The notes beneath the pieces are model-generated. The model saw only the letters and a list, made by a program, of their open reading frames with translations. It was not told the DNA's origin and did no database searches. The position numbers were made by a program, and so were the translations under genes. 64,000 nucleotides of DNA, taken from positions 22,568,001 to 22,632,000 of the forward strand of contig OZ038378.1 of NCBI GenBank assembly GCA_964036045.1, written 5' to 3'. Position 1 is the stretch's first letter, and every line of letters begins with the position of its first letter. The stretch comes from Eutreptiella sp. 'Long Island Sound 2002' (taxonomy: Eukaryota > Protista > Euglenida). This document shows, piece after piece, positions 6,629-29,074 of the stretch.

Positions 6629-9600
6629 ATGCGGCACTCACTACTCCTCGATATTCGTGGGCTCGTCATGGTGGGGGCAGGGCGCGGGATTGCATGGTAC
6701 GTGGGACCGTCACGGGTGAGGCGCCGTTCGCCCCGACGCACATGGTGGGCCCATGGCATGAGATGGGAACACCGTGGGGCGCGCATTTACCGGGTCTGGG
6801 ACAGGGGGCGGCCTTTCAGTTGGCTTGTATATAAGACGTATCTACGGGGGCACCTGGGCCCCTACAAGCCGTGGGAAGCCCTTCTACTGTTGCTTGGGGG
6901 AGACATCGAGCTCAACCCCGGGCCTTCAAGTGGTCAATGGGCTGCCGTGTATACCGCACTGAACAAGGGAGTGGTCAAGTCTGCTACCGGTTGCGCGCAA
7001 CCAAGTGGCGATGGCCTCCGGTGGGCGTCCTTCAATATTGGGGGCCCCACGGTTGATTGGGACCGATGGGTCACCATCGTACAGCTCTTGTCTGATATGC
7101 GCCTCGACATTATCGGCTTACAAGAAGTTAAGCCTACCTTTCCCGACATAGAGGCGGCAACAACATTAACCTTTCCCGAGTGGCAGATCTACTATCACCC
7201 ACACCCGTCCGGGACCGTCAATGGGGTGGCATTCCTGGTCCGCAACACAATGGACCACTTCGTGCTCAAGGACGGCAATCAACGTGCCTCGCTTTTCGCA
7301 GACCCAGACGGGACCTTTCTCGGACTTACTTTGCAGCTCCCCAACAAGCCACGGCTACGGGTCCTGAACTACTATGGACTCCAAACTGCAGCCACCAAGA
7401 AGAGGCAAGATGCCTTTGTCGAGGCACACCAATACGATGTACTCATGGGCGACTTCAACGACTCTATTTGGAGCAACACCCCAAGTCGGTTTCGGCACGA
7501 TGACCTACCGAGCCACCGTCTATACGACCCGCTGCACGAACTATGCCCCGATGGGTCTGTACAGGCGGGACACACCAGAGGGTGCCACCGCCTGGATGCG
7601 ATTCTGGTCTCTTCGCGGTGCTGGGGGATTGTTAGCCCCATGACATACCATACTGTCGCCATGCCCACCTCCGACCACCGGCTCGTCCTAATGACTACAG
7701 GCCTCACCTCCACGGACTGTGAGTCCTTTATCAAAGCCACGCACCCTGCCAAGAAGTGGAATGTGCGGCAAGAGCGAGCCGCCGTGCACGAGACACAACG
7801 CATACTCGCCGGGCAAGACACCCCAATGGACGCAGTATCACGCGCTGATGCGGTCCTCAAAGCGGTGGCGCAGGCCGTCATTCGACAGGGGAAGCGCACC
7901 AAGCGGACCCGTCTCAAAACTAACACACAACAGTGGCACAAACACTTCCAAGTGGTCAAGAAGCGCATCGCGCAGGAACTGCGCGAAGTGGCCAACAAGC
8001 GCCTCTATACCATGCGTCATGCAGCCCTCCGCAAGGATGGGGCATTCTTCCGCTTGACCAAAAATTGGACCCGCGGACCATTGAAGCCCACGCAAAAGCA
8101 ACCCAGTCCGGACCTGGCGCGCGCTTTGCTAGCCAACTTCAGTGGCAACCCCCCCTATGACATGGCGGCCATTGAAGCACTCATCCCACAACTCATCCCA
8201 CAGGGGCACATGACTGACGACCCACCAAGCTTCGATGAGTTCAAAAGGGCATGTATGGGCAAGCGCAAGAAAGCCGTGGGCCCCGATGGGGTTCCGCACC
8301 GCTTGCTGGGCATGCTGCCAGACGATACGCTGCACACATTGTATGAGGGGGCGCTAGAAGTATGGAGAACAGGAGACATCCCGCAGCATTGGCTGCGGTC
8401 TGAGGTGGTGTTGATGTACAAGAAAGGGGATCCTGACCGCCCCGAGAATTATCGACCCATTGCCGTGACCAACAGTATATATCGTGTTATCATGAAGTTG
8501 TACAGGCCCCGCCTGCAGCGCCTTGTGGACCGGGTTGCTAGCCCCGAGCAGTATGGGTCGAGGCCTTTGCACACCGCAACTGAGCAAGCTGCAAACTTAG
8601 TCAACTCCCTCCACGAGCACGAAATGGAGGGCCGGGAGCCTTTTGTGGTTTTGTTGGATGTTGCCAAAGCCTTCCCGTCCACAATCCATGAAGCCATTTT
8701 CTCCATCCTGAACCATGCCGGGCTCCCGCCGAACTATGTGAACGCCTTCCGCACGATCTATGCACATACTGACACATACACGGACATACAAGGAGAACGG
8801 ATATACTTCAAGCCCACGCGGGGCGTCAAAGAAGGATGCCCCTGCTCCCCGCTCTTGTTCGCTATTGTATATGAGTTGTTGATCAAGCGTTTGATCGCCA
8901 AGTACCCGGACACATTCGTTTATGTTGACGATATTGCCATCATTGTCAAAGATCATTCTGAATTGGAACGACTCCTCACCGACCTCTCCGCTTGGGGGTC
9001 CCAGATTGGGATTCAGTTCAATCCTAACAAGACAGAAGTGTATCACTTCCACAGACCACGGTCCTCGGGCGCTACCTCAGGGGGTGCCCAGCAGGCAACG
9101 CACATCTGGTGGGGACAACATCGCCTCGACTTCAAGGATCCCATGTTCACCTACTTGGGCCACACCATCGCCGGTGTAGGGTATAGGGGCAAGGCTAGGG
9201 ATGCGCTCTTCACCGCCCTGCAAGCTCAGGTAGCCGCATACACCATCCTCCCGTTGACAAGCTTTGAGCGGGCACAAATCGTCAATTCCGTACTCATCCC
9301 CAGGTGGGTGTATAAGAGTCTCTTTATGTGGGATGTGTGTTGGGGCAACCGCATGGAGACCGCCTTCGAAGAGTTTGTCCTTCAGGCTCCCCGCGTGGAA
9401 AAGTACCTGCAGTACCGCCTCTACACGGACGTCACCGAAGGGGGACTGGGCCTCCACAGTGCGTCCTGGGCCGGTTTATGCGCCCTTATTCAGCTAGTCC
9501 AACGGGCCTTGCGAGTTCCACACAGGCCTATGACGAGGCGCACCAACTCAGGTCATCTCCCACACATGGTGGAGAAGTACCGCAAAATCCTGCTGTCCTT

Positions 9601-11758
9601 TGGTATGGAAATGGGGCGCCTCCCACGCGCCGGCCAATCGATAGGTCGAAAGGCACCCAAACGGGCCCACGATGACCTCGAGTCACTCTTCGATGATGAG
9701 GACTCCGACGATTGCAGGTTTGAGTCGCTTGTACCCCACCAGTACCTCCAATCCCTGCGTCCCAAGAGCGGCACTAGTCCCGTGCAACCCAACGTTGAGC
9801 AATCAGGCCGTGCCTGGCACCAACAGGGGCAACCCACGGGGTCGACGTGGTACAGTGACGGCAGCCTGTTGGAAGGGCGTGCTGGCACAGGGGTGGTCAA
9901 CGGACCTATGCGCATCCAAGCGAGAGTACCGGGCCCGCAGACGATTTATAGGGCAGAAATGTACGGCATATGGATCGCGGCGTGCCTAGCCCAACCGGGG
10001 GACTCCATCGTGCTTGACAACCGGGCTGCGGCTCGATGCGTCTCCAAGCCACCCAGCCCACAATCGTCCGACTATGATTTGCACGACGCAGCGTACCAGC
10101 TTATCTCCACCAAGGCACTCCAAGTACGTTGGGCACGTGGGCATCGGGACCCTAAAAAGGCGCATAGTTTGCAAGATTATCAGGACAGGATTGGCAACGA
10201 ATTAGCCGACCTCGCAGCCCGAGCGGGCAGTACCATGCACCCTTGCCGTGGTCTGGGCAGCACATCACCCGCGGATATCCTCTTGAACGGCCATGTAATG
10301 CCGTCCCCTGCCCGTAAGTGGATCATCAAATCACGCCCCCAGAAGCTGGTACACGAGGCGCATTGGACGTCATGGCTGCCTTTGCGCGCGGTCAACCGAG
10401 ATAAGTGGGGTCCATGGCTGTGGGGGACACTGCGATTGCCGGGGTATGGGGCACCCTGGGAAACCGGGCCGGTGCTGTGCCCACGGTGTGGACAGCGCCA
10501 TGGCCTTGCAGTGCAGGAGTGCCTCTTGTCATGCCCCTCCGAATCCCGGTTTTGGGACATTTGGACCGACGCATGGGAGACATGGAAACCGGAGGCAACC
10601 AAGTGGCGACGAACGGCGTCCGCAGACGAACTGCGCATGTGCACCCGCTTGCAGTTCCCACACTCCCTTCAACGATCCTTCCTTCCAGTCCAGGCGCACT
10701 GGAGGGTGGTAGTTGCCACATGGCACTTCCACGTATTCCAGCGATTGCAGGCGTGGGTCGTTGACAAGCTGCAGCACGCCCCAACTTTCGTCAGCAACAA
10801 GCGGCCCACGCACATTGTCCCACCTGTTGCTGGGGCCCTGCCGCAGGTAGCTAAACCTACGGCCCGCAACATCTGGAACCACGTGAGAGGCGTACTGTCG
10901 ATCCCGCCGCCATCAGAGCCACGTTTCACAGATACTGCGCCCACGGTGGAGGAACTTCGGTGGCAATTGACACAAGCGGTCACCACTGCCGAGCGCACGT
11001 GGGTCTTGGAGGCCATGGCCCGGCACCACCATGTAGCACCGCCGCGCAAACGGCCCAGAGAACCGTCGCCGCCACCGGCACAGGCTCCGGTCTCACCGCC
11101 GCGCGAGTCTCGTGAAATTCATGCCGGACCCTTCCTGGAACAGGCTAGGCGTCTCATGCTACACGCCCAAATGCAGGCCGCACGACTCTGCCTGGAAGAG
11201 GTGGCGCAGGCACTCGCCCGGCAAGCCGTCACACAGAAGTCCCTCTTCTTGGCACACCACCACGAGCACTTGTGCCGGCAAGCGTACTTCCTCTACAAGG
11301 AACATACGACGCGGTGGTATGTAGAAGCGCAACAGGCGGTCTACCACTTGTCCTGGATGGCGGATTCTCGCCGACTACGCTTCCGCCAGTGGCGAACAGC
11401 TGTCCTCCCCGAGGCGCGGTCCACGGTGTCGCGCAAGCTCGCCGTGGCATCCTCGTGTTGGGAGCAGGGACATGTTTCGCTGTCCACCGGCATCCAAGCG
11501 GAAGAAGCATCCGAATGGCGGCATATGTCCCAAGTGCACGCGGTGACCCTTACGGCCTTACGGCGGACGACTTTGTCGGACCCCCGATGGGACATCCGGG
11601 GGGCCACCGCACAGCGCATGAAGCGCTTGCGGGACGAGAACCCACCCGAGACACACAAGAAACGGAGGACAGAGGCGCCGGAGGTTCCTAGTGATCTCCA
11701 GGATATGGAAATCCCGCTGGAGGACATGGGCGATGTCATAGTCTTGACTGGATTGTAA
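6629..11758 (+). CDS. LINE A ORF2, 1709 aa: 2A peptide, APE endonuclease, reverse transcriptase, RNase H, Cys/His knuckle
   Basis: APE motifs SFNIGG, GLQEVK, GDFND, RLDAIL, SDHRLV. RT motifs YRPIAV, LDVAKAFPS, GVKEGCPCSPLLF, YVDD (8921-8932). RNase H motifs YSDGS, RAEMYG, GHRD, GNELADLAA. CPRCGQRH knuckle. Confidence 0.97.
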   Translation: MRHSLLLDIRGLVMVGAGRGIAWYVGPSRVRRRSPRRTWWAHGMRWEHRGARIYRVWDRGRPFSWLVYKTYLRGHLGPYKPWEALLLLLGGDIELNPGPSSGQWAAVYTALNKGVVKSATGCAQPSGDGLRWASFNIGGPTVDWDRWVTIVQLLSDMRLDIIGLQEVKPTFPDIEAATTLTFPEWQIYYHPHPSGTVNGVAFLVRNTMDHFVLKDGNQRASLFADPDGTFLGLTLQLPNKPRLRVLNYYGLQTAATKKRQDAFVEAHQYDVLMGDFNDSIWSNTPSRFRHDDLPSHRLYDPLHELCPDGSVQAGHTRGCHRLDAILVSSRCWGIVSPMTYHTVAMPTSDHRLVLMTTGLTSTDCESFIKATHPAKKWNVRQERAAVHETQRILAGQDTPMDAVSRADAVLKAVAQAVIRQGKRTKRTRLKTNTQQWHKHFQVVKKRIAQELREVANKRLYTMRHAALRKDGAFFRLTKNWTRGPLKPTQKQPSPDLARALLANFSGNPPYDMAAIEALIPQLIPQGHMTDDPPSFDEFKRACMGKRKKAVGPDGVPHRLLGMLPDDTLHTLYEGALEVWRTGDIPQHWLRSEVVLMYKKGDPDRPENYRPIAVTNSIYRVIMKLYRPRLQRLVDRVASPEQYGSRPLHTATEQAANLVNSLHEHEMEGREPFVVLLDVAKAFPSTIHEAIFSILNHAGLPPNYVNAFRTIYAHTDTYTDIQGERIYFKPTRGVKEGCPCSPLLFAIVYELLIKRLIAKYPDTFVYVDDIAIIVKDHSELERLLTDLSAWGSQIGIQFNPNKTEVYHFHRPRSSGATSGGAQQATHIWWGQHRLDFKDPMFTYLGHTIAGVGYRGKARDALFTALQAQVAAYTILPLTSFERAQIVNSVLIPRWVYKSLFMWDVCWGNRMETAFEEFVLQAPRVEKYLQYRLYTDVTEGGLGLHSASWAGLCALIQLVQRALRVPHRPMTRRTNSGHLPHMVEKYRKILLSFGMEMGRLPRAGQSIGRKAPKRAHDDLESLFDDEDSDDCRFESLVPHQYLQSLRPKSGTSPVQPNVEQSGRAWHQQGQPTGSTWYSDGSLLEGRAGTGVVNGPMRIQARVPGPQTIYRAEMYGIWIAACLAQPGDSIVLDNRAAARCVSKPPSPQSSDYDLHDAAYQLISTKALQVRWARGHRDPKKAHSLQDYQDRIGNELADLAARAGSTMHPCRGLGSTSPADILLNGHVMPSPARKWIIKSRPQKLVHEAHWTSWLPLRAVNRDKWGPWLWGTLRLPGYGAPWETGPVLCPRCGQRHGLAVQECLLSCPSESRFWDIWTDAWETWKPEATKWRRTASADELRMCTRLQFPHSLQRSFLPVQAHWRVVVATWHFHVFQRLQAWVVDKLQHAPTFVSNKRPTHIVPPVAGALPQVAKPTARNIWNHVRGVLSIPPPSEPRFTDTAPTVEELRWQLTQAVTTAERTWVLEAMARHHHVAPPRKRPREPSPPPAQAPVSPPRESREIHAGPFLEQARRLMLHAQMQAARLCLEEVAQALARQAVTQKSLFLAHHHEHLCRQAYFLYKEHTTRWYVEAQQAVYHLSWMADSRRLRFRQWRTAVLPEARSTVSRKLAVASSCWEQGHVSLSTGIQAEEASEWRHMSQVHAVTLTALRRTTLSDPRWDIRGATAQRMKRLRDENPPETHKKRRTEAPEVPSDLQDMEIPLEDMGDVIVLTGL
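6866..6925 (+). other. 2A-like ribosomal skip (StopGo) peptide, PWEALLLLLGGDIELNPG/P
   Basis: Exact D(V/I)ExNPGP consensus at 6902-6925 with a hydrophobic upstream helix, just before the APE domain. 2A-like sequences are known at this position in APE-type non-LTR elements. Confidence 0.85.
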
Positions 11759-17556: not shown

Positions 17557-18858
17557 GTACTGCTCCACCACCAGGCGCAGGGCAAAGGATGCCAAGGGCC
17601 ACTCCCACACACACTGTGGCCCCGCAAGTAATCGGGTCCACACAGGGAGAGGCCCAAACTGCCCCCCCAGAAAGGTGATGTATCTTAGCGAACGCTATAA
17701 AGCTGTTTCAAAGAAAGGTCATCAGACCCGATAAACTGCCGTCAGTAGGATGGTAGGAATGTTGAACCACACAGTTGGAGTATGATTGAATGATGGCCCC
17801 GGCACATACATGTCGGAGCAAAAAAAAACCTCTCATGGGGAAACACCATATTTTCGAAGGAAGCTCGTATGGGTCTGTGGATTTGGGAGCGTTGCTAAAA
17901 GGCCCATAGCTCAGGGCTGTGCAACCTGTCCTGGGACGCAGTTACCCAGCATAACAATTGGGCCCCAGTGCCTTTACCCTCCCCTGAGCAAGGAGAGGGG
18001 TAGCTTAGGTGCATTCTGTTCCTGGCTCCACCTGGTGCCCTCTGAGGCATCGTTGTTTCACTTGCCGCATGGAGGGGATGCTATCCTTGATGCCACGTAC
18101 ACCCATTGTGAAGCACTGCCGGCCCCACAGCAGGGCTTTGGTAGGATGACCACCCACTGCCTTGTGTCCCGCAGCAGGGTTTGGTGGGAGACACACCCAC
18201 TGCACGCTGCACGGGCGGTGAATCCCTGAAACAACTAGCAAAATGCCTCAGCAGACCGCGCACCACTGATGGGTAGCACTCGGTGATCTGGAAGCCCCTG
18301 GCCCTATGTTACATTTTCCACCTCAGTGGTGCCGAGCACCTTTCAAACTCCGCTGTCTTGGGAAAGACTTCATTTGGAGCATGCCAGCGCCAGCATGGGA
18401 GGGATGCCAAGGGGCAGAAGCAGCACTTGTGAGCACCGGGACAGCTGTACTATTCTCATGTAGTAAAAAATTTCCCCCAGCTGTTCGGTAGCCCAACAGG
18501 ATCTCATCTCTCACAGTTTTTATAAACTTTTCCTCTTTACCCCCAACCCAACAGGTGGGCAACCAACCCACCTACCCACAAGTGGAGGATTCCCTTCTCA
18601 GAAGGCGCCCACGTACGTTCACTTGGAAGTACCAACTGGCATGCTCTCTCAGATGTTATGGCACATATGCACAAAGAAACACACACACACACACACACAG
18701 GTGTTTTCTTTGGTGCCTGCCAGCCGGGGACACTGCATATCCAACCGAAAGCCAAACAGGCACGCTCATCAGCGCAACAACCCCCGCCAGGGCTGCACTC
18801 GCCCCCCCCCCTGGGCCTGTGAAACCGCTGCTCGGCACGACCCCCTGGGTCACACAAA

Positions 18859-20655
18859 ATGTCGGGCATAGCCCAAGATCTGCTTGATGCACTTAAGCAG
18901 CCAGAGGTGCTGCAAGCTATGGCTAACGCCATCGCACCACTTCTCAGTGGCAAGAAGCAGGCTGCGTCCAGGGACACGGAGCAAAGCGGCTCTGCGCGGG
19001 AAGAGCATCTACTGGAGGTCATCAGGAGTCTCAAGGACACCATCAGGGAGCTGAGGACAGCTCTCCAGGCTGCGAACACCGATCAAACAGCACCAAGTGC
19101 TCGGGAGGTCGCGGCAGAGAAGGATATACGATCTTCGTACAAGGCAGCTCTTCTGAAGAAGACGCCTGGTAAGAGCCAAGTCGTAGTCAAGGAGGTTCAA
19201 GATTTGGGAGACCCCCTGCAACCAACGGGACTGGCAGTCAAGGCCCTCAAAGGCAAGCATACCTTCACAGCAGTGCAGGGGAAGAGACTATACAAGGGAG
19301 ACAACAAATCACAGCTTGACATGAAGCAGATTGGCCCCAGTAAAGCGGTTTCTGATTGGAAGGTGTCAGCAGACACCGAGGGAGCTTTTGCGCATGTGCT
19401 TCTGGTTGGGCAGCAGGTGGCTGAAGCTCATTTCATTGCGACACAGGCGATGTCACAGCATGCGTGTATCTGCAGTGTCAGTGCACATGTCCTAGCTACA
19501 GGCAGCAAACGGAACGATGCCTCTGTTCACGGAATTCTGACGGCATTGGGCAGATCGAGGGACAGCCTCACCATCTCTGGCATGACGCTCAGCGTAAAAG
19601 TCATCACGCAACGTATGGAGTGGGAGACCAAGAAGGATGCGGACGTAAAAATGACGCCGCCTGAGCACTCGCTGCTGCTTTGCTGGGAACGCTCTGGCGA
19701 GGGCACTGAAGATGCAGATCATGAGCCAGTGGACCTGCCGCAGGATAAGGCGGCGGTCAGAGTTGTTTGCTGTTTGGACCCGACCATCCTACAAGTCACT
19801 GGTGAAGACAATGCCAAAATGAAGGCTGCCCGATGGGCAGAAGAGAAGTGCTGGGAGCTTACGTCCCCATACCTCACCCCCACGCTTACACCCCCCCCCC
19901 CTATGCAAGTGGGAAAGAGGGGCTCAAAATACGAAGTAACCATGGTGCTGCCAGCTCCTATGGTGAAACAGGTGCTTTGCAATGGCGGAAAAGTGACAGG
20001 AGCTGAGTACCGCCTTTTCATGAATAAAGATACCGATGTGGACACACTCAAAGCAAACATGGTATGGGTCAAACTTCCCCAGAACACAAACAAAGCCATC
20101 TCCGATCATTGGAAAAGATTACACAAACAACCGTGGTTTGCAGGCCTCATCGCAGGGGACCGTGCCGACCGCCTGGGAGTGCGAGTTTGGGGCGGGCCTG
20201 TCATCCCTGACACACGGCAAGAAATAGCTACACTGCTTGGTATCCTTCTGACCCCCCCTGTGACCCGGGTACGCGTCAGAGGGTATGGTGTTTCAATGGG
20301 TCTGGTCTCAGGCCAACAATCGGCTGCACAGCGTGAAGCCGACAGAGTTTTCGGCGCGAACATTGTCACTGTGATAAGATGCCAGCACCTGAAGCACAGT
20401 GGTCTGGTGTCGCCAGTTTTTGACATGGATATAACGGGCATCCCCCCAGATTGGGAAGGGTGCACAGTTCCTGCGCAGGATTCCCGGATGCCCGTGCGGA
20501 AATGGCACAAGTGCATCCGCAAGGCTACTGCCCCCACGTACAAGCCAGTAGGCAAGCGTGCCACCCTACCCCCCCGACAGGGATGTGTGACGCCAGAGGA
20601 TGAGGAAATGCCGGAAGAGGCAGCCAAGGACGAGGAGGGTGAAGGCATCCTCTGA
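18859..20655 (+). CDS. LINE B ORF1, 598 aa (coiled-coil N-terminus)
   Basis: Intact ORF ending 5 nt before the ORF2 ATG at 20661. Its position and helical N-terminus are typical of LINE ORF1. Confidence 0.8.
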   Translation: MSGIAQDLLDALKQPEVLQAMANAIAPLLSGKKQAASRDTEQSGSAREEHLLEVIRSLKDTIRELRTALQAANTDQTAPSAREVAAEKDIRSSYKAALLKKTPGKSQVVVKEVQDLGDPLQPTGLAVKALKGKHTFTAVQGKRLYKGDNKSQLDMKQIGPSKAVSDWKVSADTEGAFAHVLLVGQQVAEAHFIATQAMSQHACICSVSAHVLATGSKRNDASVHGILTALGRSRDSLTISGMTLSVKVITQRMEWETKKDADVKMTPPEHSLLLCWERSGEGTEDADHEPVDLPQDKAAVRVVCCLDPTILQVTGEDNAKMKAARWAEEKCWELTSPYLTPTLTPPPPMQVGKRGSKYEVTMVLPAPMVKQVLCNGGKVTGAEYRLFMNKDTDVDTLKANMVWVKLPQNTNKAISDHWKRLHKQPWFAGLIAGDRADRLGVRVWGGPVIPDTRQEIATLLGILLTPPVTRVRVRGYGVSMGLVSGQQSAAQREADRVFGANIVTVIRCQHLKHSGLVSPVFDMDITGIPPDWEGCTVPAQDSRMPVRKWHKCIRKATAPTYKPVGKRATLPPRQGCVTPEDEEMPEEAAKDEEGEGIL

Positions 20656-20660
20656 GTTTC

Positions 20661-23600
20661 ATGCATTTTTCAGGACGGCAACCCAATACAGGTCCTCTCC
20701 AATTTGTAAACACAAATGTCACGTCATTACGTGTGCACCACGAAGATGTCTTTAGTTTTAAGGCTGATGTGGTCGGGATGCAAGAGACCCGTCTAACGGC
20801 ATCAGGCCAGCGCTGCATGTAGGCAATTGCAGCAGAATATGGCTGGTCATGTTTTTGGGGGAAACCACTGGGCTCGCCCACGGGTGGGATCTGGGGCGCC
20901 CCTCAAGGGGGGGTTGGAATGTTGTTCAAGAAGGGATGGAATGTACGCCAAGTGGAGGCGGACGAAGGAGACCCCATTGCCAGCAGACTCTGGCATTCCG
21001 GCAGATGGCTGCACACATGCGCAGGCATCGGTGAAGGGCACACTGTCCTGAACATATGCGTAGCATACGGCATCCCGGCCAATGCCCCGCTGAACACTGA
21101 ATTCTGGGAGTTAGTCATTTGCTATCTCAGCAGGCTGGGAACCTCCCCCTGCCTTCTATTTACAGATGCGAACTTCAATTTCGATGTCTTTCATAAAATA
21201 CCTGCAGCCCCCCTTACTGCATTAGCAGATGGCTGGCTCGTAGATGCAGACCATGTATTCGCCACACTGCTCCAGATTTCCTGTGTCAGCAATTTTTCTA
21301 AGGATGGTGCCCCTGGAACTCGCATCGATGCACTGCTGGCCACGCCTGCTCAGGTCTCAGCACTTGTTGACGTCTCTGCTGTGCAGGGACATTCCCTCCC
21401 AGGCCACACGCCGGTACGATATACCTTTGCTCTGGATGGCCCAAGACAGAAAGTTATCAAGATGAGGAAGCTCCCCCCCTTTTCACTGCCTCCGCGAGAG
21501 GTAGAAGAGGCACAGGAAATAAGCGACATGCTGCCGAAGCCTTGGGAAACGTGGGCAGCCCTGGTCAGTGAAGGGAATGTCAATGCCATCTGGGATCAGT
21601 GGACTTGGCTAGCAGAGGAAGTGGGGGTCGTACTCTCATGCAATCACCTCACAAAGGATAGCCTAGGGGCCGCCCTCCCATTCGCACCTAAGTCTGCACC
21701 CCGTGGCAGAGGGACAGCACAGATGTTGCGAGAAACTACTCTGGCCCCAAGCAAAACAACTGCATATGGGGGGCCACGCACTCGGCTGATATCCAAGATC
21801 ACCGGTGCCCTGGGATCACTACGCACAGTCATCCAGTGGCAGCGAAAGGAGGCGGGTGTCCAGGGTAACCGACTCACAGCGTCTGCGAGGCGCAAAGCAC
21901 AGAGAGCCGTCCGATTGGGCGCTGTGCCGCAGCAGGTACAACACGCGTGGCAAGCGGCGTGCCGGCGTATGCGTAAAATTGGCGCGGCGGTCAGAGATGA
22001 CTTACTGCTACAGGACTTCATTACACTGGCCCCGGACCCCAACCTCCCCCCCATCCGTCAGATGCCAACCCTGGTCCAGACCATGTCTGAGTATGACCAG
22101 CTCTGTACATTAGGCAGGAAGTACGCTAAACAGCAAGAACGTGATCCAATAGAGGCATGGAAGCACAAGATGAATCAAGCCTGGTTGGACAGGCCAAAGG
22201 ATGTATACCGTTGGATTCAAAATGAATATCAACCCCCCCTTGTCATGCTGTTGGATCCGGAGACACAACAACCCACCTCCAGTGTGAATAGAATGGACGA
22301 CATTCTACATGCCTCATGGGACAAAGTAATGAGGAAGTATGCGCATGCCCCAGAGCCGGATGCGGCCGCCTTTGTCCGCAAATACGGGGTTTTTCTACAG
22401 CGCGGTCGGCTCATGCAAGCCGCTCCCATCACAGGCGCCCGACTCACCAAAAGGTTCAGGAAAATGGGCATCCATACAGCCACCGGCCTTGACGGCTGGT
22501 GCGTCGCCGACTTGCTATCGCTGCCCATGCAGCTGATGGATATGCTAGCAGAACTGCTGCACGTCATCGAGCACACAGGACAGTGGCCTCAGGCCTTGGC
22601 CAAAGGGTATATTTCGCTCATTCCTAAGGGCGAGGGCATGTTGCCCATGCAACAACTCCCGCTCTCCGTGTTATCCCAAATTTACCGAGTCTGGGCAGGG
22701 ATTAGACTAGAGGAATGCATGCTGTGGCAAGAGGGGTGGATTCACCCACATGCCTTTGGTTTCAGAAAACGAAGAGGGGCCACAGATGCGGCGGCGCTCA
22801 TCGCCCTGCTCGTGGAGCTCCACAAAATTATCAAATCTGTCCTGCACGGTTTCGGACTTGACTATGTCAAGTGTTTTGACTTGATACCGCAGTCCATTGT
22901 ACTGCACATTGCCCTGGAACAGGGCATGAATCCAGGAACCCACCGAGCCCTTAAGGGCATGTATACATCCCTGGTAAGATGTTTCAAAATCATGGGCTGC
23001 TGCGCCAGTTTCTTTGCGGCCACAAATGGCATATTGCAGGGATGCCCACTTTCAGTCATACTGATCAATTTGATGACTAGTATCTGGAAACGGGTCCCTG
23101 GCCGGTGTCTTGTAGCCATTCCTCCGTGCGTTGCAAAAGGGGGGTCAGGGGTGTGCCTCCCGCTGCCAGCCCATAGGTGTCGTCAGCATAACCAAGCGAT
23201 GTGAGTATAAAGTGCAGGACCTGAACTGGCTGATCCCCAGGGGGGAGCGCGCGCGCTGACACCGACAGGTGCTGTTTTTGGGCATCCAGCAGTGTCAATG
23301 CCAAAAAGTCCGTGGGGTTCTCCTCATCCTCATCAGAGCCAGTGAAGGCAGAACTGCTGGGTGTGCCTTTCCCGGTGGAAACAGAGTTTAGGTCGCTGGG
23401 TGCAGGCATTCGCACAACCGTTGCCACGTGCTCAGGCCCGCTAATCCTGAAGCACATATCTCGTGCCTGCGGCCTCCTTGACCGTGTGCATGGAGCCCAG
23501 GGCAATTATGAACGCCGCTGCGAGATCATATCAACTATGATCACAGCCACAGGCCTACATGCATCGGAGATCGTCCCACTCCGTATGCGGGATCTCGCTA

Positions 23601-25769
23601 CCTTCGAAACCCGCGTCATTAGAACTATCTGGGGCCCTACACGCCCAGGGAGGGCAAAAGAAAATTTCTTTTCCTTGCTATGCAAAGGCCACCGGATTTC
23701 TCCACCCATGGTGGTCAAGTACTCACGCCTGCTTTGGCTGTCGCATCTTTGCCGGAACAGGGGCCCAAACCAGATCACTGCCCAGGCCATCTGGGAAACA
23801 GGATTATACACAAGAAACAGCGGCCCCTTTGGGCGCGCAGTGCAAACAGCACAGGAATGCGGCTGGGCGCCTATGCAGGGTTGGTGGGGCTGGAAAGTCC
23901 CAGGGCAGAGTGAACCCCTTATGTTAAATGGGGACAAACAGACTGTAAAACACGAAGTCCGCGAACAGCTTAGGAAGCAATTGTTAGTCTCGTTACTCCA
24001 ACGGCGACCTCGCCTGTTTGCGGGTCTGCACTATGCCACAAACAGGCAACTTCTACAGCCGAGCATTGCCAGCTTTGGGTCCGAACTAGAGCGGACCATA
24101 TTGAGAGGGGTTCTTTCTGGAGCGACCTGGACCGCGCTGCGCGCGTATCAACGTGGCCTTCGCACCTCCTCCGCATGTCCTTTTTGTAATGCGTCCCCAG
24201 AAGATGAGGAACATATCCTCTGGCATTGTGTCGCGTGGGACCACGTCCGTGACCCGCTGTTGGCGCTTGTGCACACGGCCCTTTCCCAGGTGCCGGAGCT
24301 TCCACCACCCGGCCAGTGGCCGGCATGCTTACGGCGATGTGGTTTAGCCCCAGAAATTTCCACAGAGGCAATAAAATCTGGTGCAGCTTTCACCTTCCTG
24401 CGCGCGGTACACTCCATGTTTGTGTGCATTATAGCAGCACGCAAAAAGCGAGATGCGCACAGCCCTTCCATCTTTGCAGGGTACAGACTGTCTCAACAAG
24501 TCAGGCAATACCCCTATCAACAACTGGTTGGGCCACTGCCCCAAACGGTGGCACACGGTGCCTTGACACTCCGCACCCCCAAGGGGCATGAATGGAAGTG
24601 GGAAAAGAGCTTTCTCGCGGACCTACTCGGTTGGCTACGAGCCCTGACGTGGCCGGAGGAACCGGGGACAGTCACCTTTTTGGAACTAGCAATTGATTTC
24701 GAAGAGTTCGCGCAAAGGACCCTCCCCCATGCGCCTCAGGCGAAGTATGCAGGACATACCCTGTCCCTCCAAGAACGAGGCAGGGTACTGCGTTTGGCAA
24801 TGTCCAGCGCTCAGCGACTGGTCACCTCAGGCCAGCTGCACCCAGCCGGCATGGTGACCCGCTGTGGCTCGCTTGTGCCGCTGGGGGGACCGGCGATCTG
24901 CGGTTTAAATAAACGCCCGTATTTTGCACGCCGAGAGGCCATGATTTCACACATCCGCAAACTCGTTCAGTATTGCGAAGAGCAGTGGGTGGCCAAGGCG
25001 GGAACACACCGCACACATGCGCTGCGCCCATACACATACCGCCCGCGTAAGACAGCGGCAGAGATTGAAGCACATAGACTGCACAGAGCCCTGTGCGGGA
25101 ACTTGCAGACAGGCCTGGCGCCAGCATCTGGTGCACAGCTCACAGCTCACAGACTTTTTCCCCATCATCGGCGCCGGTCGCTTGCCACAGCGCCCATACA
25201 CAGGAACACGCAGGCACGTACCAACAACAGCACAGGCACACGTAAACAGGGCGCCAACAAATGCCACTGTATGTGACACACACTCTCTACCGGCGTGCAT
25301 CACGTGCAAGAGGCTGCGCAAAACAGCCCAGGAGTGTTGCTCTTTGGGGCATCACGAAGCGGGGCACGTCCCTCGCCGCCCGCAACTACAGCTCTGTGAG
25401 GCCCACAGACTGCCGCCGTGCCCCATTTGCGCACGCACACAACGGGGGGTAAGGCACTGTTGTGCAAGGGGGCATCACAAAGTGTGCACCCCAGTCCAGC
25501 CATCCAGGAAGCGTTGCTCCTCTCAACAGCCGAAGCGTTCATATAAACGCCCACGAGTTGGGCCTTCACAGACAAGTCAAGCCTCTTTGAGGTCTCCACA
25601 CCAACCCCCAACGCCTCCCGCCCCCAAGCGGCGGAGGCCCAAAACGCCATCCCCGCCCTCCCCACCAACCCCTGTTCCACAGGGGCTGGTAGAGACGCCG
25701 GATACGGAAGCAATCTGCCGCCAGCTCTTTCTGGGGGCACGCGGAAGGGCCAGCTCCGAGGTTACCTAA
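20661..25769 (+). pseudogene. LINE B ORF2 (APE endonuclease, RT, CxxC..HxxxxC finger, twin Cys/His repeats), disrupted
   Basis: APE: NTNVTSL, GMQETRL, TDANFN, TRIDAL. RT: LDYVKCFD, GILQGCPLS. Finger: CPFC..EHILWHC. Lesions: TAG at 20820-20822, inversion 23095-23291 containing YADD, frameshift near 25140. Ends GRASSEVT*. Confidence 0.9.
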
Positions 25770-26056
25770 CCGTACACACACAGAGGTTCTGATTCCGCAG
25801 AAGGGATGGATCACAGGCGCAAAGAGGCAACAGCAGACTGAGCCGAATACACCTGCCATCTCATGGCTGCATAAGGATCTACCTCGTAAAAAGTACACGC
25901 TCTTTTTCTGGCGCCTTGACCGTGGTTGGGCGCTTACCCACAAAATGCCAGAACCGGCGGTCTCTCGGCGTTGAGGGCTACCCACGGCCCCCTGCCAGGG
26001 CCGAGACCCGCGCCCTCACGTCGCGGGCGGCCGCGGCTTCCGCGGCAAGTACCCCG

Positions 26057-28870
26057 ATGGGGGACCAGACCGCGGCCCTCACCGCGGCCCTCACCGAGGC
26101 CATCGTCGCGGCGTTGCAGCCACTGCTACAGCGCACCCCGTGGGGGGACCCCCTCATAGCGGAGGACTCCGATCAGGGGGGTTGGATACGCGATGGAGCC
26201 CAGTACTATGGGGAGGAGTACTTCTGGCTGCCCCCGGGGCAGACTCCGCGACAGTGGCGAGAAGTACATCGTCAAATGCGCGAGCAGCAGCAGCTTCACG
26301 CGAAGGAGGTCCAGCCCCAGCTCGAGCCCGACGAGGGTGCCGCGGCAGCAACGGCGGCGGCGGCAGTGCTGGCGGCGGCAACGTTGGCAGCCAAGGCGGA
26401 GCTGGCTATTCAGCAAGCGGTCGAGGACGAGGAGGCTATTGTGCACATCGCGCGTGCCGGGGCCCAGCCAGGGCGAGCGGCCGCCACGGCGGAGTGGCCG
26501 GAGCTGCCGGCAACATGCGTGCCCCCGCCCACGACGCCCTCCCGGGGCGAGCCGGGCCGGAGGGCACAGGGGCGAGCCCGCGCCAGGGCGCGTCGAGCGG
26601 TCGCGTCGTTGGCAGCGGCGTCCACGGCGGCAGCAACCGCGGCAGCAGTGGCAGCGGCAGCGGCCATCGTCGTGTCGGTCTCGGACACGACACCGGAGGC
26701 GGCATCGGCAGCCGGCGCTGCCCTGGACCACGAGGAGTCGACGGCGGCAGCGCACAACGGTCTGGGCCTCATCGAGCAGGGGGCCATGGTATGCCTGCAG
26801 CGCACTGACCCACTAGGCCTGTGGGGCCCAGTGGGGGCATGGGCGGATGAGCCCTGCCCCCTGTATGGCAAGCTGGAGGTGCAGGCGGCGTCCCCCAGCG
26901 CCCAGGACGCCACCTGTGACTTTTTGGGCAGCCCGCAGGCTGCCAATGGCGCTGTCTGTGGCGCTACCGGTGCGCCTGGGGCTGGAGGGGACGCATCCCC
27001 CAGCGCCCAGGACGCCATCTGTGCCTTTTCGGGCAGCCTGCAGGCTGCCAATGGCGCTGTCTGTGGCGCTACCGGGGCGCCTGGGGCTGGTGGGGACGCA
27101 TCCCCCAGCGCCCAGGACGCCACCTGTGACTTTTTGGGCAGCCCGCAGGCTGCCAGTGGCGCTGTCTGTGGCGCTACCGGGGCGCCTGGGGCTGGTGGGG
27201 ACGCATCCCCCAGCGCCCAGGACGCCATCTGTGCCTTTTCGGGCAGCCCGCAGGCTGCCAATGGCGCTGTCTGTGGCGCTACCGGAGCGCCTGGGGCTGG
27301 AGGGGACGCATCCCCCAGCGCCCAGGACGCCATCTGTGCCTTTTCGGGCAGCCTGCAGGCTGCCAAAGGCGCTGTCTGTGGCGCTACCGGGGCGCCTGGG
27401 GCTGGTGGGGACGCATCCCCCAGCGCCCAGGACGCCACCTGTGACTTTTTGGGCAGCCCGCAGGCTGCCAGTGGCGCTGTCTGTGGCGCTACCGGGGCGC
27501 CTGGGGCTGGTGGGGACGCATCCCCCAGCGCCCAGGACGCCATCTGTGCCTTTTCGGGCAGCCCGCAGGCTGCCAATGGCGCTGTCTGTGGCGCTACCGG
27601 AGCGCCTGGGGCTGGAGGGGACGCATCCCCCAGCGCCCAGGACGCCATCTGTGCCTTTTCGGGCAGCCTGCAGGCTGCCAAAGGCGCTGTCTGTGGCGCT
27701 ACCGGTGCGCCTGGGGCTGGTGGGGAAGCATCCCCCAGCGCCCAGGACGCCACCTGTGACTTCTCGGGCAGCCTGCAGGCTGCCAATGGCGCTGTCTGCG
27801 GCGCTACCGGGGCGCCTGGGGCTGGAGGGGACGCATCCCCCAGCACCCAGGGCGCCATCTGTGCTGACCCCCCGGCCCTTACCCACTTATCTGGGTTTCC
27901 TGGGGGGAGGGGGGTGGAGGTGGTCAGGACCAGCCCCCCCCCCTGCCTTGCGTTGACCCAATGCCCTGGGGCATCCGGGGGCTGCATTGTTTTTGAGGAA
28001 GTCTTTCAGGGAGGGGGGAGGCAGCAGGAGATGCTGGAGGATGAGGTGTGCACCCGTGCGTGCATAGAGGAGCTCCAGGTGGCGACGTTGGAGCTCCTGA
28101 TGGGTAGTTTTCGGGAGGGGGGGCTGCGCCTTTCTGCCCCCCCCTCCCCCATCAATTTATGCCCTAATCCGCCCCCGGGCCGCCTGCCCTGTGCGGCGCC
28201 CTGGGGGTCAGATTCTGTTTCATCTGGCGGGGGATGGGGCCTCACCCCCCCCCTCCACTGCCCTCGCCCCAGCCTCCTGCCCCCCAGACCACGGGGCCAG
28301 GGGAGGGGGGGCGTGGCGGCTCTGCCACCATCTTTGAGAGGGCCATTGGCCCAGCCCACCAGCGGTGGGAACGGAGGGGCCCTGCCGGTAGCCAGAGCCG
28401 CCGGCCTCCCCGTGAGTGGTGGGGCCCAGCTGGCTTTCGTTTCTGCTAGCCCAGTGATGTCACGGGCTAGGGAACCCCCCCCGTGCGATCCGAGCCCGCA
28501 CTCAGGGCACAAGGTGCGTACATGGGGGGAGGGGGATCACAATCACCCCCTCCCACAGGTGCATCCAGCAGCTCCAGCGCTGGAGCTGGGGCAGTCGGTT
28601 TCCGCAACCGCCAGCCCGGAGGAGGTTCATGTGGGGACGTCGGCTTCAACCGCCGCCGGCCCTGCGAAAGAGGCGTGGGGGGTGGGGATTCCGGATCGCC
28701 CCCTCCCCCCTTCGTGGCCGCAGGCAGCGGCACGGGCGGTTCTGGGGCACAGCCCAGGAGGGGGGCACGCCCCCCCAGCAGGAGGCAAGGAGGCGCCGGC
28801 TCCGGCGCATCAGGGGGGCAGCAGGGTGCCGGTGATGGTGCACGGGAGAGCCTCAAGTGAGGTGACCTAA
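26057..28870 (+). CDS. Ala/Gly/Pro-rich protein (~937 aa from MGDQ; frame open from 25916) with nine-plus 35-aa repeats, ending HGRASSEVT*
   Basis: The frame is intact across the element. Complex N-terminus (WIRDGAQYYGEEYFWLPPGQTPRQW). No RT, EN or integrase motif seen. Confidence 0.65.
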   Translation: MGDQTAALTAALTEAIVAALQPLLQRTPWGDPLIAEDSDQGGWIRDGAQYYGEEYFWLPPGQTPRQWREVHRQMREQQQLHAKEVQPQLEPDEGAAAATAAAAVLAAATLAAKAELAIQQAVEDEEAIVHIARAGAQPGRAAATAEWPELPATCVPPPTTPSRGEPGRRAQGRARARARRAVASLAAASTAAATAAAVAAAAAIVVSVSDTTPEAASAAGAALDHEESTAAAHNGLGLIEQGAMVCLQRTDPLGLWGPVGAWADEPCPLYGKLEVQAASPSAQDATCDFLGSPQAANGAVCGATGAPGAGGDASPSAQDAICAFSGSLQAANGAVCGATGAPGAGGDASPSAQDATCDFLGSPQAASGAVCGATGAPGAGGDASPSAQDAICAFSGSPQAANGAVCGATGAPGAGGDASPSAQDAICAFSGSLQAAKGAVCGATGAPGAGGDASPSAQDATCDFLGSPQAASGAVCGATGAPGAGGDASPSAQDAICAFSGSPQAANGAVCGATGAPGAGGDASPSAQDAICAFSGSLQAAKGAVCGATGAPGAGGEASPSAQDATCDFSGSLQAANGAVCGATGAPGAGGDASPSTQGAICADPPALTHLSGFPGGRGVEVVRTSPPPCLALTQCPGASGGCIVFEEVFQGGGRQQEMLEDEVCTRACIEELQVATLELLMGSFREGGLRLSAPPSPINLCPNPPPGRLPCAAPWGSDSVSSGGGWGLTPPLHCPRPSLLPPRPRGQGRGGVAALPPSLRGPLAQPTSGGNGGALPVARAAGLPVSGGAQLAFVSASPVMSRAREPPPCDPSPHSGHKVRTWGEGDHNHPLPQVHPAAPALELGQSVSATASPEEVHVGTSASTAAGPAKEAWGVGIPDRPLPPSWPQAAARAVLGHSPGGGHAPPAGGKEAPAPAHQGGSRVPVMVHGRASSEVT
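26888..27862 (+). repeat. Coding tandem array, 9+ x 105 bp (ASPSAQDAxCxFxGSxQAAxGAVCGATGAPGAGGD)
   Basis: Period 105 (tcccc at 26891, 26996...). Units 3-5 and 6-8 form a 315-bp higher-order duplication. Confidence 0.95.
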
Positions 28871-28949
28871 GTCAAGGGCGGACGTCCTTCCGCCGCGCCG
28901 CGACACACCGGGGGGCCGGGGGTGGGATAGGGCAGGCTTCAGGCAGGCT

Positions 28950-28973
28950 CTAACCCGCTAACCCCTAACCCTC
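28950..28973 (+). repeat. Short telomere-like (CCCTAA)-type tract in the element 3' UTR
   Basis: ctctaacccgctaacccctaaccct: three degenerate units only. Confidence 0.35.
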
Positions 28974-29074
28974 CCGTCGCAAGAGCGGCCAGGACATTAA
29001 AAGCCATCAACCTCGTAAAAAGTACAGATCACACACACACACACACATACATGTATGTATGTATGTATGTATGT

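Follow-up and report, generated by a model that had tools for sequence, protein, structure and literature searches.

The window analysed here, a 64,000-nt stretch of contig OZ038378.1 (positions 22,568,001 to 22,632,000 of the forward strand, assembly GCA_964036045.1) from the euglenid Eutreptiella sp. 'Long Island Sound 2002', contains a 3.1-kb element at positions 25898-29009 of the window, for which we use the working name E. A preliminary description, made from the letters of the window alone, had proposed E as a protein-coding, enzyme-less passenger of a neighboring long interspersed nuclear element (LINE), LINE B. Comparison of E with its copies elsewhere in the genome modifies this picture: insertion of E appears to be limited to the last 16-17 bases of other LINE retrotransposons, making it a parasite of parasites. 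LINEs B, C, D and G are likewise working names, with B, C and D forming class I, and G and E forming class II. The features of E and its borders, all on the plus strand, are as follows.

25881-25897, plus strand: left copy of a 17-nt motif that forms the 3' end of LINE B; target site of E according to the best model
25898-29009, plus strand: body of E, 3112 bp, 72% GC, from 5' CGCTCTTTTTCTGG... to ...GCCATCA(A) 3'
26057-28870, plus strand: E open reading frame (ORF), 937 aa, ATG at 26057 and stop at 28868-28870, an orphan protein
26891-27864, plus strand: 105-bp (35-codon) tandem array, 9.3 units, inside the E ORF
28791-29009, plus strand: 3' module common to E and LINE G, with the last 26 codons, the stop and a 139-nt 3' untranslated region (UTR)
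28841-28870, plus strand: HGRASSEVT codons and stop, the C-terminal nonapeptide of the E ORF
29010-29026, plus strand: right copy of the 17-nt motif, a LINE B-type sequence identical to the left copy; duplicated target site according to the best model
29027-29048, plus strand: GATC and then (CA)n, the usual 3' junction of LINE B, probably displaced by the insertion of E

The direct repeat flanking E is a perfect 17-bp match, as had been described, and its 16-nt core occurs twice in the window where 0.09 occurrences are expected. In the sequence of the window examined, E has no terminal inverted repeats, long terminal repeats (LTRs) or poly-A, and the 937-aa ORF is intact. The ORF exceeds the length that a GC content of 72% explains; for the roughly 700 independent codons that are open, the estimated chance is about 1e-5. 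Its product is laid out as an N-terminal region, Ala-rich helices, a basic patch, the 35-aa two-Cys repeats (9.3 units, confirming the repeats noted earlier) and one confident helix, and the C-terminal third is Pro/Gly-rich and disordered. The ending ...HGRASSEVT before the stop was also correctly reported; the last ORF of LINE B in the window ends in ...RGRASSEVT and a stop (25740-25769).

The main E frame is open from position 25916, and the 159-nt leader holds a 9-codon upstream ORF (25945-25974, ATG...TGA) that is out of frame. A perfect 18-nt palindrome, GGCAGCCTGCAGGCTGCC, is present in four of the nine-odd 105-bp units (27032-27049, 27347-27364, 27662-27679 and 27767-27784), while the remaining units have a one-base C/T variant in the central loop and keep the 7-bp stem intact. 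This palindromic repeat could act as an RNA or DNA hairpin besides its coding role.

The LINE in whose tail E sits, with the microsatellite at its 5' flank, is organized as follows.

18680-18699, plus strand: (CA)10 microsatellite, 5' flank of the insertion site of LINE B itself
18700-25880, plus strand: LINE B, young and full-length, of an L1-like LINE family specific for (CA)n
18859-20655, plus strand: LINE B ORF1
20919-23204, 23312-25276 and 25017-25769, plus strand: LINE B ORF2 in three frames, broken by, among others, a 29-bp deletion

In each of 29 other genomic LINE B copies the 3'UTR runs through the same 17 nt and then into GATC(AC)n, 5'-truncated LINE B copies elsewhere have (CA)n on both sides, and the copy in the window begins at 18700 directly after (CA)10. 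LINE B is therefore specific for (CA)n microsatellites, and the 17-mer is its own 3'-terminal motif. It follows from the 29 copies that the distance of about 125 bp previously given between LINE B and E is wrong, since E sits inside the terminal motif of LINE B. Genome-wide there are 78 exact LINE B ends with the motif, 71 of them followed by GATC and 7 by something else.

The window copy of LINE B differs from the consensus of 30 copies by four substitutions in the last 870 nt, plus the 29-bp gap. Its reverse transcriptase (RT) domain gives a weak match to RVT_1 in Pfam, a zf-RVT motif follows the RT, and the closest solved structures are those of L1 ORF2p (E-value 6e-6 to 4e-5). No endonuclease was detected in LINE B ORF2 by Pfam or PDB sequence searches; by eye, its N-terminus (20919-21500) has APE-like motifs (...FTDANFN..., ...TRIDALL..., ...GHTPV...), and the first ~60 residues of this APE-like domain seem to lie outside the ORF. 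The GC content of LINE B is 57%, against 72% for E and 74% for LINE G. LINEs B, C and D (25780-25800 in the window; loci L009, L019 and L048) have a conserved box, AGAGGTTCTGA, 10-20 nt past the stop of ORF2; it resembles the ORF2-terminal GAGGTTACCTAA and is absent from E and G. Another LINE in the window, LINE A (6629-11758, with a 1709-aa ORF), is without the 16-mer.

Copies of E were compared in 70 loci (L-numbers) of the same 2.28-Gb genome. At least 40 scored matches, 95-99% identical, were found with the first kilobase of E, and again at least 40 with its last 1.1 kb. Ten full copies, rebuilt from overlapping loci, are 2698-3746 bp long, and the ends are the same in all genomic copies. 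Seven of the ten have an intact ORF of 868-1148 aa, and all seven end in VMVHGRASSEVT before the stop. The repeat array holds 8-16 units per copy, always in frame, so that ORF length shifts in steps of 35 codons. Truncated units (24 to 2256 nt, lacking their 5' part) occur in arrays, and E/G-type ends in the genome number about 300 by extrapolation from chromosome 1. A 16-17-nt motif with the consensus CCCTCGTTAATAG[T/C]ACA stands before and after nearly every copy, full or 5'-truncated; the flanking repeat is thus not an anonymous target-site duplication (TSD).

These comparisons bear on most of what the preliminary description had claimed. The passenger retroelement stands in that E is multicopy and enzyme-less, with truncated members and in-frame variation of the repeats, but LINE B is its host and target and not its likely driver. 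Both 5' truncations and variable repeat number, which had been put forward as checks, were found: 5'-truncated units exist besides at least 40 near-full copies, and repeat number ranges from 8 to 16. Copies with different TSDs, also sought, did not appear, because the same motif flanks essentially all of them; the idea of an anonymous TSD of variable length is replaced by a 16-17-nt terminal motif of LINEs. The expectation that indels preserve the frame is correct for changes in repeat number, all of which are in frame, whereas 21 E copies carry eight private frameshifts, mostly in homopolymer runs, as expected from decay after insertion.

Copies of E lie in head-to-tail arrays. At the head stands, in every case, a LINE unit followed by the 16-mer; behind it come E units, a single one or several, each of which closes with a further 16-mer, and GAKC(AC)n ends the array. 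Further units in the loci are a diverged LINE B lineage, two B-like LINE 3' ends (C and D) and the 3' end of the GC-rich LINE G. The 70 loci contain about 89 16-mers, which were sorted by what comes next.

E, full 5' end: 19
E or E/G fragments (truncated or 3'UTR): about 14
G-specific truncated units: 3
GAKC/(CA)n: about 47
B, C or D units: 0

The sequence before LINE B, C and D units is (CA)n. The counts thus separate two classes of units: class I (B, C and D) targets (CA)n and owns the 16-mer, and class II (G and E) is found behind the 16-mer.

Several observations indicate that the 16-mers around E stem from the locus and not from the source copy of E. Four E copies without a single difference over 993 nt have four different 16-mer variants at their borders, and E copies with B-type tails are scattered across E haplotypes and form no single group. 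Flanking 16-mers are identical in 22 of 27 pairs, rare variants included. All tails in an array are of the type of its head LINE (B, AAAAAG+GATC; C, TAGCACA+GAGC; D, TAGTACA). The five occurrences of one doubly mutated variant in the 2.28-Gb genome all fall in a single 14-kb array, and for a CpG-decayed variant there are about 26 isolated sites and about 9 same-strand clusters. Simple template jumping between independent RNAs with their own tails was rejected, since a unit has matching tails on its two sides, rare variants included, and these are of the type of the head LINE. Integration of a circle by a single crossover at the 16-mer was rejected as well, the private double variants being complete on both sides.

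Adjacent E units in an array differ as much as random pairs, and for this reason the notion that tandem E units are copies of one RNA was rejected. In three loci (L027, L028 and L030) E is a mosaic, with a 5' kilobase 96-97% identical to the young consensus and a 3' 1.1 kb 99.4-99.6% identical to it, from which recombination or template switching between E subfamilies follows. Two adjoining E units at C3:189209371-189215234 (L015 and L040) belong to different haplogroups and have a private dinucleotide in common (alignment columns 638-639), which points to gene conversion within arrays. Three tandem units of ~100 bp, each of the form (CA)n(CG)n(CACCC)n...ACCCTCT plus the 16-mer, lie upstream of a truncated LINE G unit at L004:680-1010; they may reflect stuttering re-initiation or local duplication.

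The results given here for LINE G refer to its last 2.5 kb. The tail of its ORF2 is 37% identical to the post-RT region of LINE B (E-value 8e-39), contains a CPYCG...H...C zinc motif and ends in HGRASEEGT. The last ~220 nt of E (26 codons, stop and 3'UTR) are 83% identical to a LINE G fragment over 221 nt (blastn). The ~130-nt 3'UTR is ~98% identical between E and G units, which also agree in the position of the stop, and the E-type 3'UTR is kept even in a G unit that is 74-80% identical elsewhere. It is predicted to form a long stem-loop (minimum free energy -66 kcal/mol, z -3.2). The 3'UTR of LINE B is unrelated to that of E. Because the 3' module of E is of G type and the B 3'UTR is unrelated, E is regarded as the partner of G, with LINE B as the site that was hit. 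A sequence at one stage regarded as a diverged E ("E2") was rejected as such, since it is the 3' end of LINE G.

As would be expected of a non-autonomous partner of a stringent-type LINE, E shares 3'-terminal homology with an autonomous LINE of the genome in which it lives, is without an RT or endonuclease of its own, and is multicopy with 5'-truncated members. Apart from the last codons, the ~2.7-kb interior of E showed no relation to the LINE proteins of B and G. The 5' end of E has no significant similarity to LINE B-type 5' ends or ORF1. A likeness of the E N-terminus to LINE B ORF1, proposed earlier, is not significant: the best BLASTP E-value was 3.7, and 1003 of 5000 shuffles reached the score. 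A 13-aa match to the ORF1 N-terminus of a relative of LINE B (L062) was reached by 22 of 5000 shuffles (P ~0.004) and is only suggestive.

The E ORF is under purifying selection. Substitutions (synonymous/nonsynonymous/stop) were compared with expectations from the observed mutation spectrum, including CpG context.

Two 5' subfamilies: 24/15/0, expected 10.9/26.8/1.3; P<5e-5; omega 0.25
Young copies, 5' coding part: 25/33/0, expected 17.2/38.6/2.2; P 0.016; omega 0.59
Young copies, 3' coding part: 44/52/0, expected 28.6/65.2/2.2; P 0.0005; omega 0.52

The protein has no Pfam family at E<=0.01, no match to a solved structure at E<=1 and no relative in the Atlas. A word search with it found only near-identical copies and one older copy, and an exhaustive HMMER search of 1.84 billion representative proteins gave 42 matches, all of them unnamed E-like fragments of 32-97% identity. 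In diverged E-like relatives (45-65% identity) discrete motifs are conserved, as is the C-terminal nonapeptide. Structure prediction, which the preliminary description had suggested for the N-terminal 130 aa, was done by AF2 for the E protein from the E-like family alignment; the model has a mean pLDDT of 58 and a single confident helix, with the rest at low confidence. From selection and modeling together, the E protein is best described as selected, lineage-restricted and, as predicted, mostly disordered.

All LINEs of the group end ORF2 in HGRAS-x-E-x-T, with the stop 112-140 nt from the 3' end, and the E ORF has the same ending.

LINE B: HGRASSEVT, stop-to-16-mer distance 112 nt
LINE D: HGRASSEVT, 118 nt
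E: HGRASSEVT, 140-141 nt
LINE C: HGRASTEIT, 118 nt
LINE G: HGRASE(E/D)GT, 139-140 nt

The codons of the nonapeptide differ between B and D at seven of the nine positions; between B and E, neither Ser codon is the same. The same peptide from different codons implies that the end of ORF2p is conserved at the protein level across the group, and that the unrelated ORF of E is fused to it in frame. Together with the selected ORF, the nonapeptide makes it a reasonable idea that translation may matter to mobilization, and it is the best support for this idea. A bolder version of this idea, which we regard as rather doubtful, is that E hijacks cis-preference. Translation to that stop, or the peptide itself, would hand the RNA 3' end to the RT, so that an enzyme-less RNA would have to be translated and to end in the same peptide; with the 16-mer doubling as a spliced-leader acceptor, target choice, expression and mobilization would form one coupled system.

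As to expression, one E copy (L002:2494-2545, minus strand, contig C20) starts with the spliced leader known from E. gracilis (PMC6242988). The leader is 24-25 nt long, with T9 instead of T8, and is followed by CACAG and then the usual 5' end of E. It is joined 4-5 nt upstream of that end, which is at the AG within the 16-mer (..AAG|TACA). At least in this case, therefore, a trans-spliced mRNA served as template, made from a precursor that began upstream of E. This one copy suggests that the target motif also supplies the trans-splice acceptor of E and that E is transcribed by read-through from an upstream unit.

We consider it fairly probable that LINE tails are the specific insertion site of LINE G and the non-autonomous E, and that each insertion yields a TSD of constant sequence, 16-17 bp long. 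In this model, E RNA would most likely be copied by the RT of LINE G, because E carries the 3' module of G; the role of G as the driver of E mobilization is likewise rated most likely. G and E would pass over (CA)n and target the 16-17-nt terminal motif that stands just before GAKC(AC)n in B, C and D, and also the tails of earlier G and E units. A staggered cut at the 16-mer would duplicate the motif as a TSD of constant sequence. Since each insertion would recreate the target, head-to-tail arrays (LINE-16-E-16-E...) would grow. The genome has 78 exact B tails and ~300 E/G ends, so that most targets lie beside earlier E/G units, which again would make arrays grow. The window would represent one such event, the insertion of E in the tail of a young full-length LINE B. 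Transcription of E would probably be by read-through from the upstream unit, and at least sometimes trans-splicing at the AG of the left 16-mer would give a capped mRNA for the E ORF. The E protein would be needed for propagation of E, its C-terminus mimicking the conserved end of the LINE ORF2 protein. The model builds on observations that stand by themselves, namely the structure of the copies, the logic of the tails, the common 3' module, selection on the ORF, conservation of the nonapeptide and the spliced-leader copy.

A number of points weigh against this model. The TSD is deduced from a duplicated motif and not from a pair of empty and filled alleles. An argument from age for sequential insertion, with an old LINE and a young E, was withdrawn, because the upstream B unit of L020 belongs to a live divergent lineage (32 synonymous and 23 nonsynonymous changes, no stop); LINE B and E in the window are equally young. 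One G fragment (L006/L014) follows (CT)n, and one 40-nt E/G fragment (L015) follows unique DNA, both without an upstream 16-mer. The flanking motifs differ by 1-2 nt in 5 of the 27 pairs, the downstream tail of the L006/L014 array is not identical to the upstream variant, and gene conversion, as in the C3 array, could homogenize some tails. Fragments of 24-120 nt from E or G lie beside full E units more often than independent hits would predict, and this excess of very short fragments is what a single stuttering event would give. The driver role of LINE G is also assigned to an element whose enzyme domains lie outside its known last 2.5 kb.

Could the repeated 16-mer instead be the product of a single event? 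In such an event the RT would start target-primed reverse transcription in (CA)n on the tail of its own LINE RNA, the 16-mer cDNA would anneal to E (or G) RNA, and the enzyme would re-initiate, sometimes repeatedly, on the LINE RNA tail that it still holds and finally copy the LINE body; the repeated 16-mer would then be a switch duplication, with no TSD. Template jumping by non-LTR reverse transcriptases is established biochemistry (R2; L1 chimeras such as U6/L1), which favors this explanation, and we regard it as somewhat unlikely. It accounts for array tails that are identical and of the type of the head LINE, for a head unit that is always a LINE and for the uncoupling of E haplotype from tail type. 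The short abortive E/G fragments by full units and the three tandem ~100-bp units of L004 also fit it. Against it, nowhere else in the assembly is there a copy from which the double-mutant tail, found five times in one array, could have come, and re-initiation would have to skip GAKC(AC)n precisely each time. Hard to reconcile with it are the absence of any B, C or D unit after a 16-mer and the behavior of LINE G, which presumably has its own enzyme and yet is found like E, with three G-specific truncated units after the 16-mer and none after (CA)n. Furthermore, no array has an E-specific fragment (one not shared with G) as its 5'-most unit joined directly to the flank, though the RT often aborts in LINE units; neither the G fragment beside (CT)n (L006/L014) nor the E/G fragment of 40 nt (L015) can settle this point.

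The other two explanations fare less well than site-specific insertion. That E is a passenger of LINE B moved to ordinary sites, with the 17 bp as a random TSD, is favored by the fact that E adjoins LINE B, has the same C-terminal HGRASSEVT before its stop and lies between two B-type tails in the window. It is hardly tenable now that the same motif, which is the terminal sequence of LINE B itself, is found at essentially every E copy. The E 3'UTR is unrelated to that of B and nearly identical to that of G, a B-type LINE stands upstream in only 4 of about 20 E copies examined, and just 7 of the 78 exact B tails continue into anything but GATC. It is also very unlikely that the E ORF is not a functional protein, being open merely through GC-richness and repeats or because an open frame shields the RNA (for example, from nonsense-mediated decay) whatever the amino acids. 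The 72% GC, the long ORFs in other frames across the repeats, an orphan product mostly predicted to be disordered and the eight private frameshifts in 21 copies would all agree with this, but the synonymous excess remains significant after spectrum matching in both the N- and C-terminal non-repeat parts, relatives of 45-65% identity keep the motifs and the nonapeptide, and five lineages preserve the nonapeptide although their codons for it differ.

The closest parallel to E and G is found among Tx1-type elements. Crocodilian Tx1-Mar LINEs and SINEU-3, a short interspersed nuclear element (SINE), use a specific site with a constant 16-bp TSD, and their "tandem insertions sandwiching a TSD" arose by sequential insertion (Kojima 2015, PMC4494074). 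As in the Tx1 type, E has one defined target sequence, tandem copies that sandwich the repeat, and a TSD that, as deduced here, is of constant sequence. Tx1-Mar/SINEU-3 and the Tx1 group (Tx1L in Tx1D, Keno, Kibi, Koshi) resemble E and G in that an L1-group LINE and a non-autonomous partner use one sequence inside another transposon, the constant TSD is ~16 bp, the target is recreated with each insertion, and relatives target microsatellites. LINEs B and G are candidate members of the Tx1 branch of the L1 clade, a group with an APE-type endonuclease; in the case of B, the RT is closest to L1 ORF2p among solved structures, and the APE-like motifs are visible only by eye. Unlike in the Tx1 systems, the target of E and G is the 3'-terminal motif of related LINEs and not a DNA transposon; and unlike SINEU-3, which is short and derived from small nuclear RNA, E is 3.1 kb long, encodes a selected protein, is without a poly-A tail and lives in a euglenid.

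Coding, enzyme-less non-LTR elements are represented by HeT-A of Drosophila telomeres and HAL1, the mammalian half-L1, in which the ORF is the Gag or ORF1 of the partner. Like E, they have kept an ORF and rely on the RT of a relative, and HeT-A also forms head-to-tail arrays. The E ORF differs in having no significant similarity to LINE B ORF1, with only its last 26 codons from the ORF2 of its partner. RIME and NARTc, the partners of ingi and L1Tc in trypanosomatids, are short and non-coding and have loosely defined sites. The ingi/RIME and L1Tc/NARTc pairs belong to the same host supergroup and have a terminal sequence common to passenger and LINE, whereas E is coding and site-specific and has only the 3' module in common with its partner. 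E is not a deletion derivative of the RIME/NARTc kind either, because it keeps a G-type 3' end, its 5' end is without a significant match to B-type LINEs and its interior is unrelated. Nor is it a SINE in the strict sense (short, non-coding, with a head of RNA polymerase III type), being 3.1 kb long with a selected 937-aa ORF. As for R1/R2-type elements, E RNA probably has target-derived ends from read-through that can guide the junctions, and relies on transcription of the host unit; its target, however, is a retrotransposon tail and not ribosomal DNA, and processing seems, from one copy, to be by spliced-leader trans-splicing and not by a ribozyme.

With few exceptions, LINEs have non-autonomous partners that are short and do not code for protein. 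E is a 3-kb partner with a lineage-specific protein under selection that ends in the conserved C-terminus of the enzyme of its driver, and it makes the long-standing question of template choice by LINEs (cis-preference), and the theft of this choice by parasites, experimentally approachable in a new system. The loci described here document retrotransposons that choose the tails of other retrotransposons as their target and give a first dissected picture of LINE biology in euglenids, in which about a third of the genome consists of unclassified repeats (PMC11252322). The use of the 16-mer as both target and trans-splice acceptor, if true, would be a euglenozoan-specific twist. In summary, E combines two arrangements that were each already known, the site-specific Tx1-like systems and the coding non-autonomous non-LTR elements, in a host where they were undescribed.

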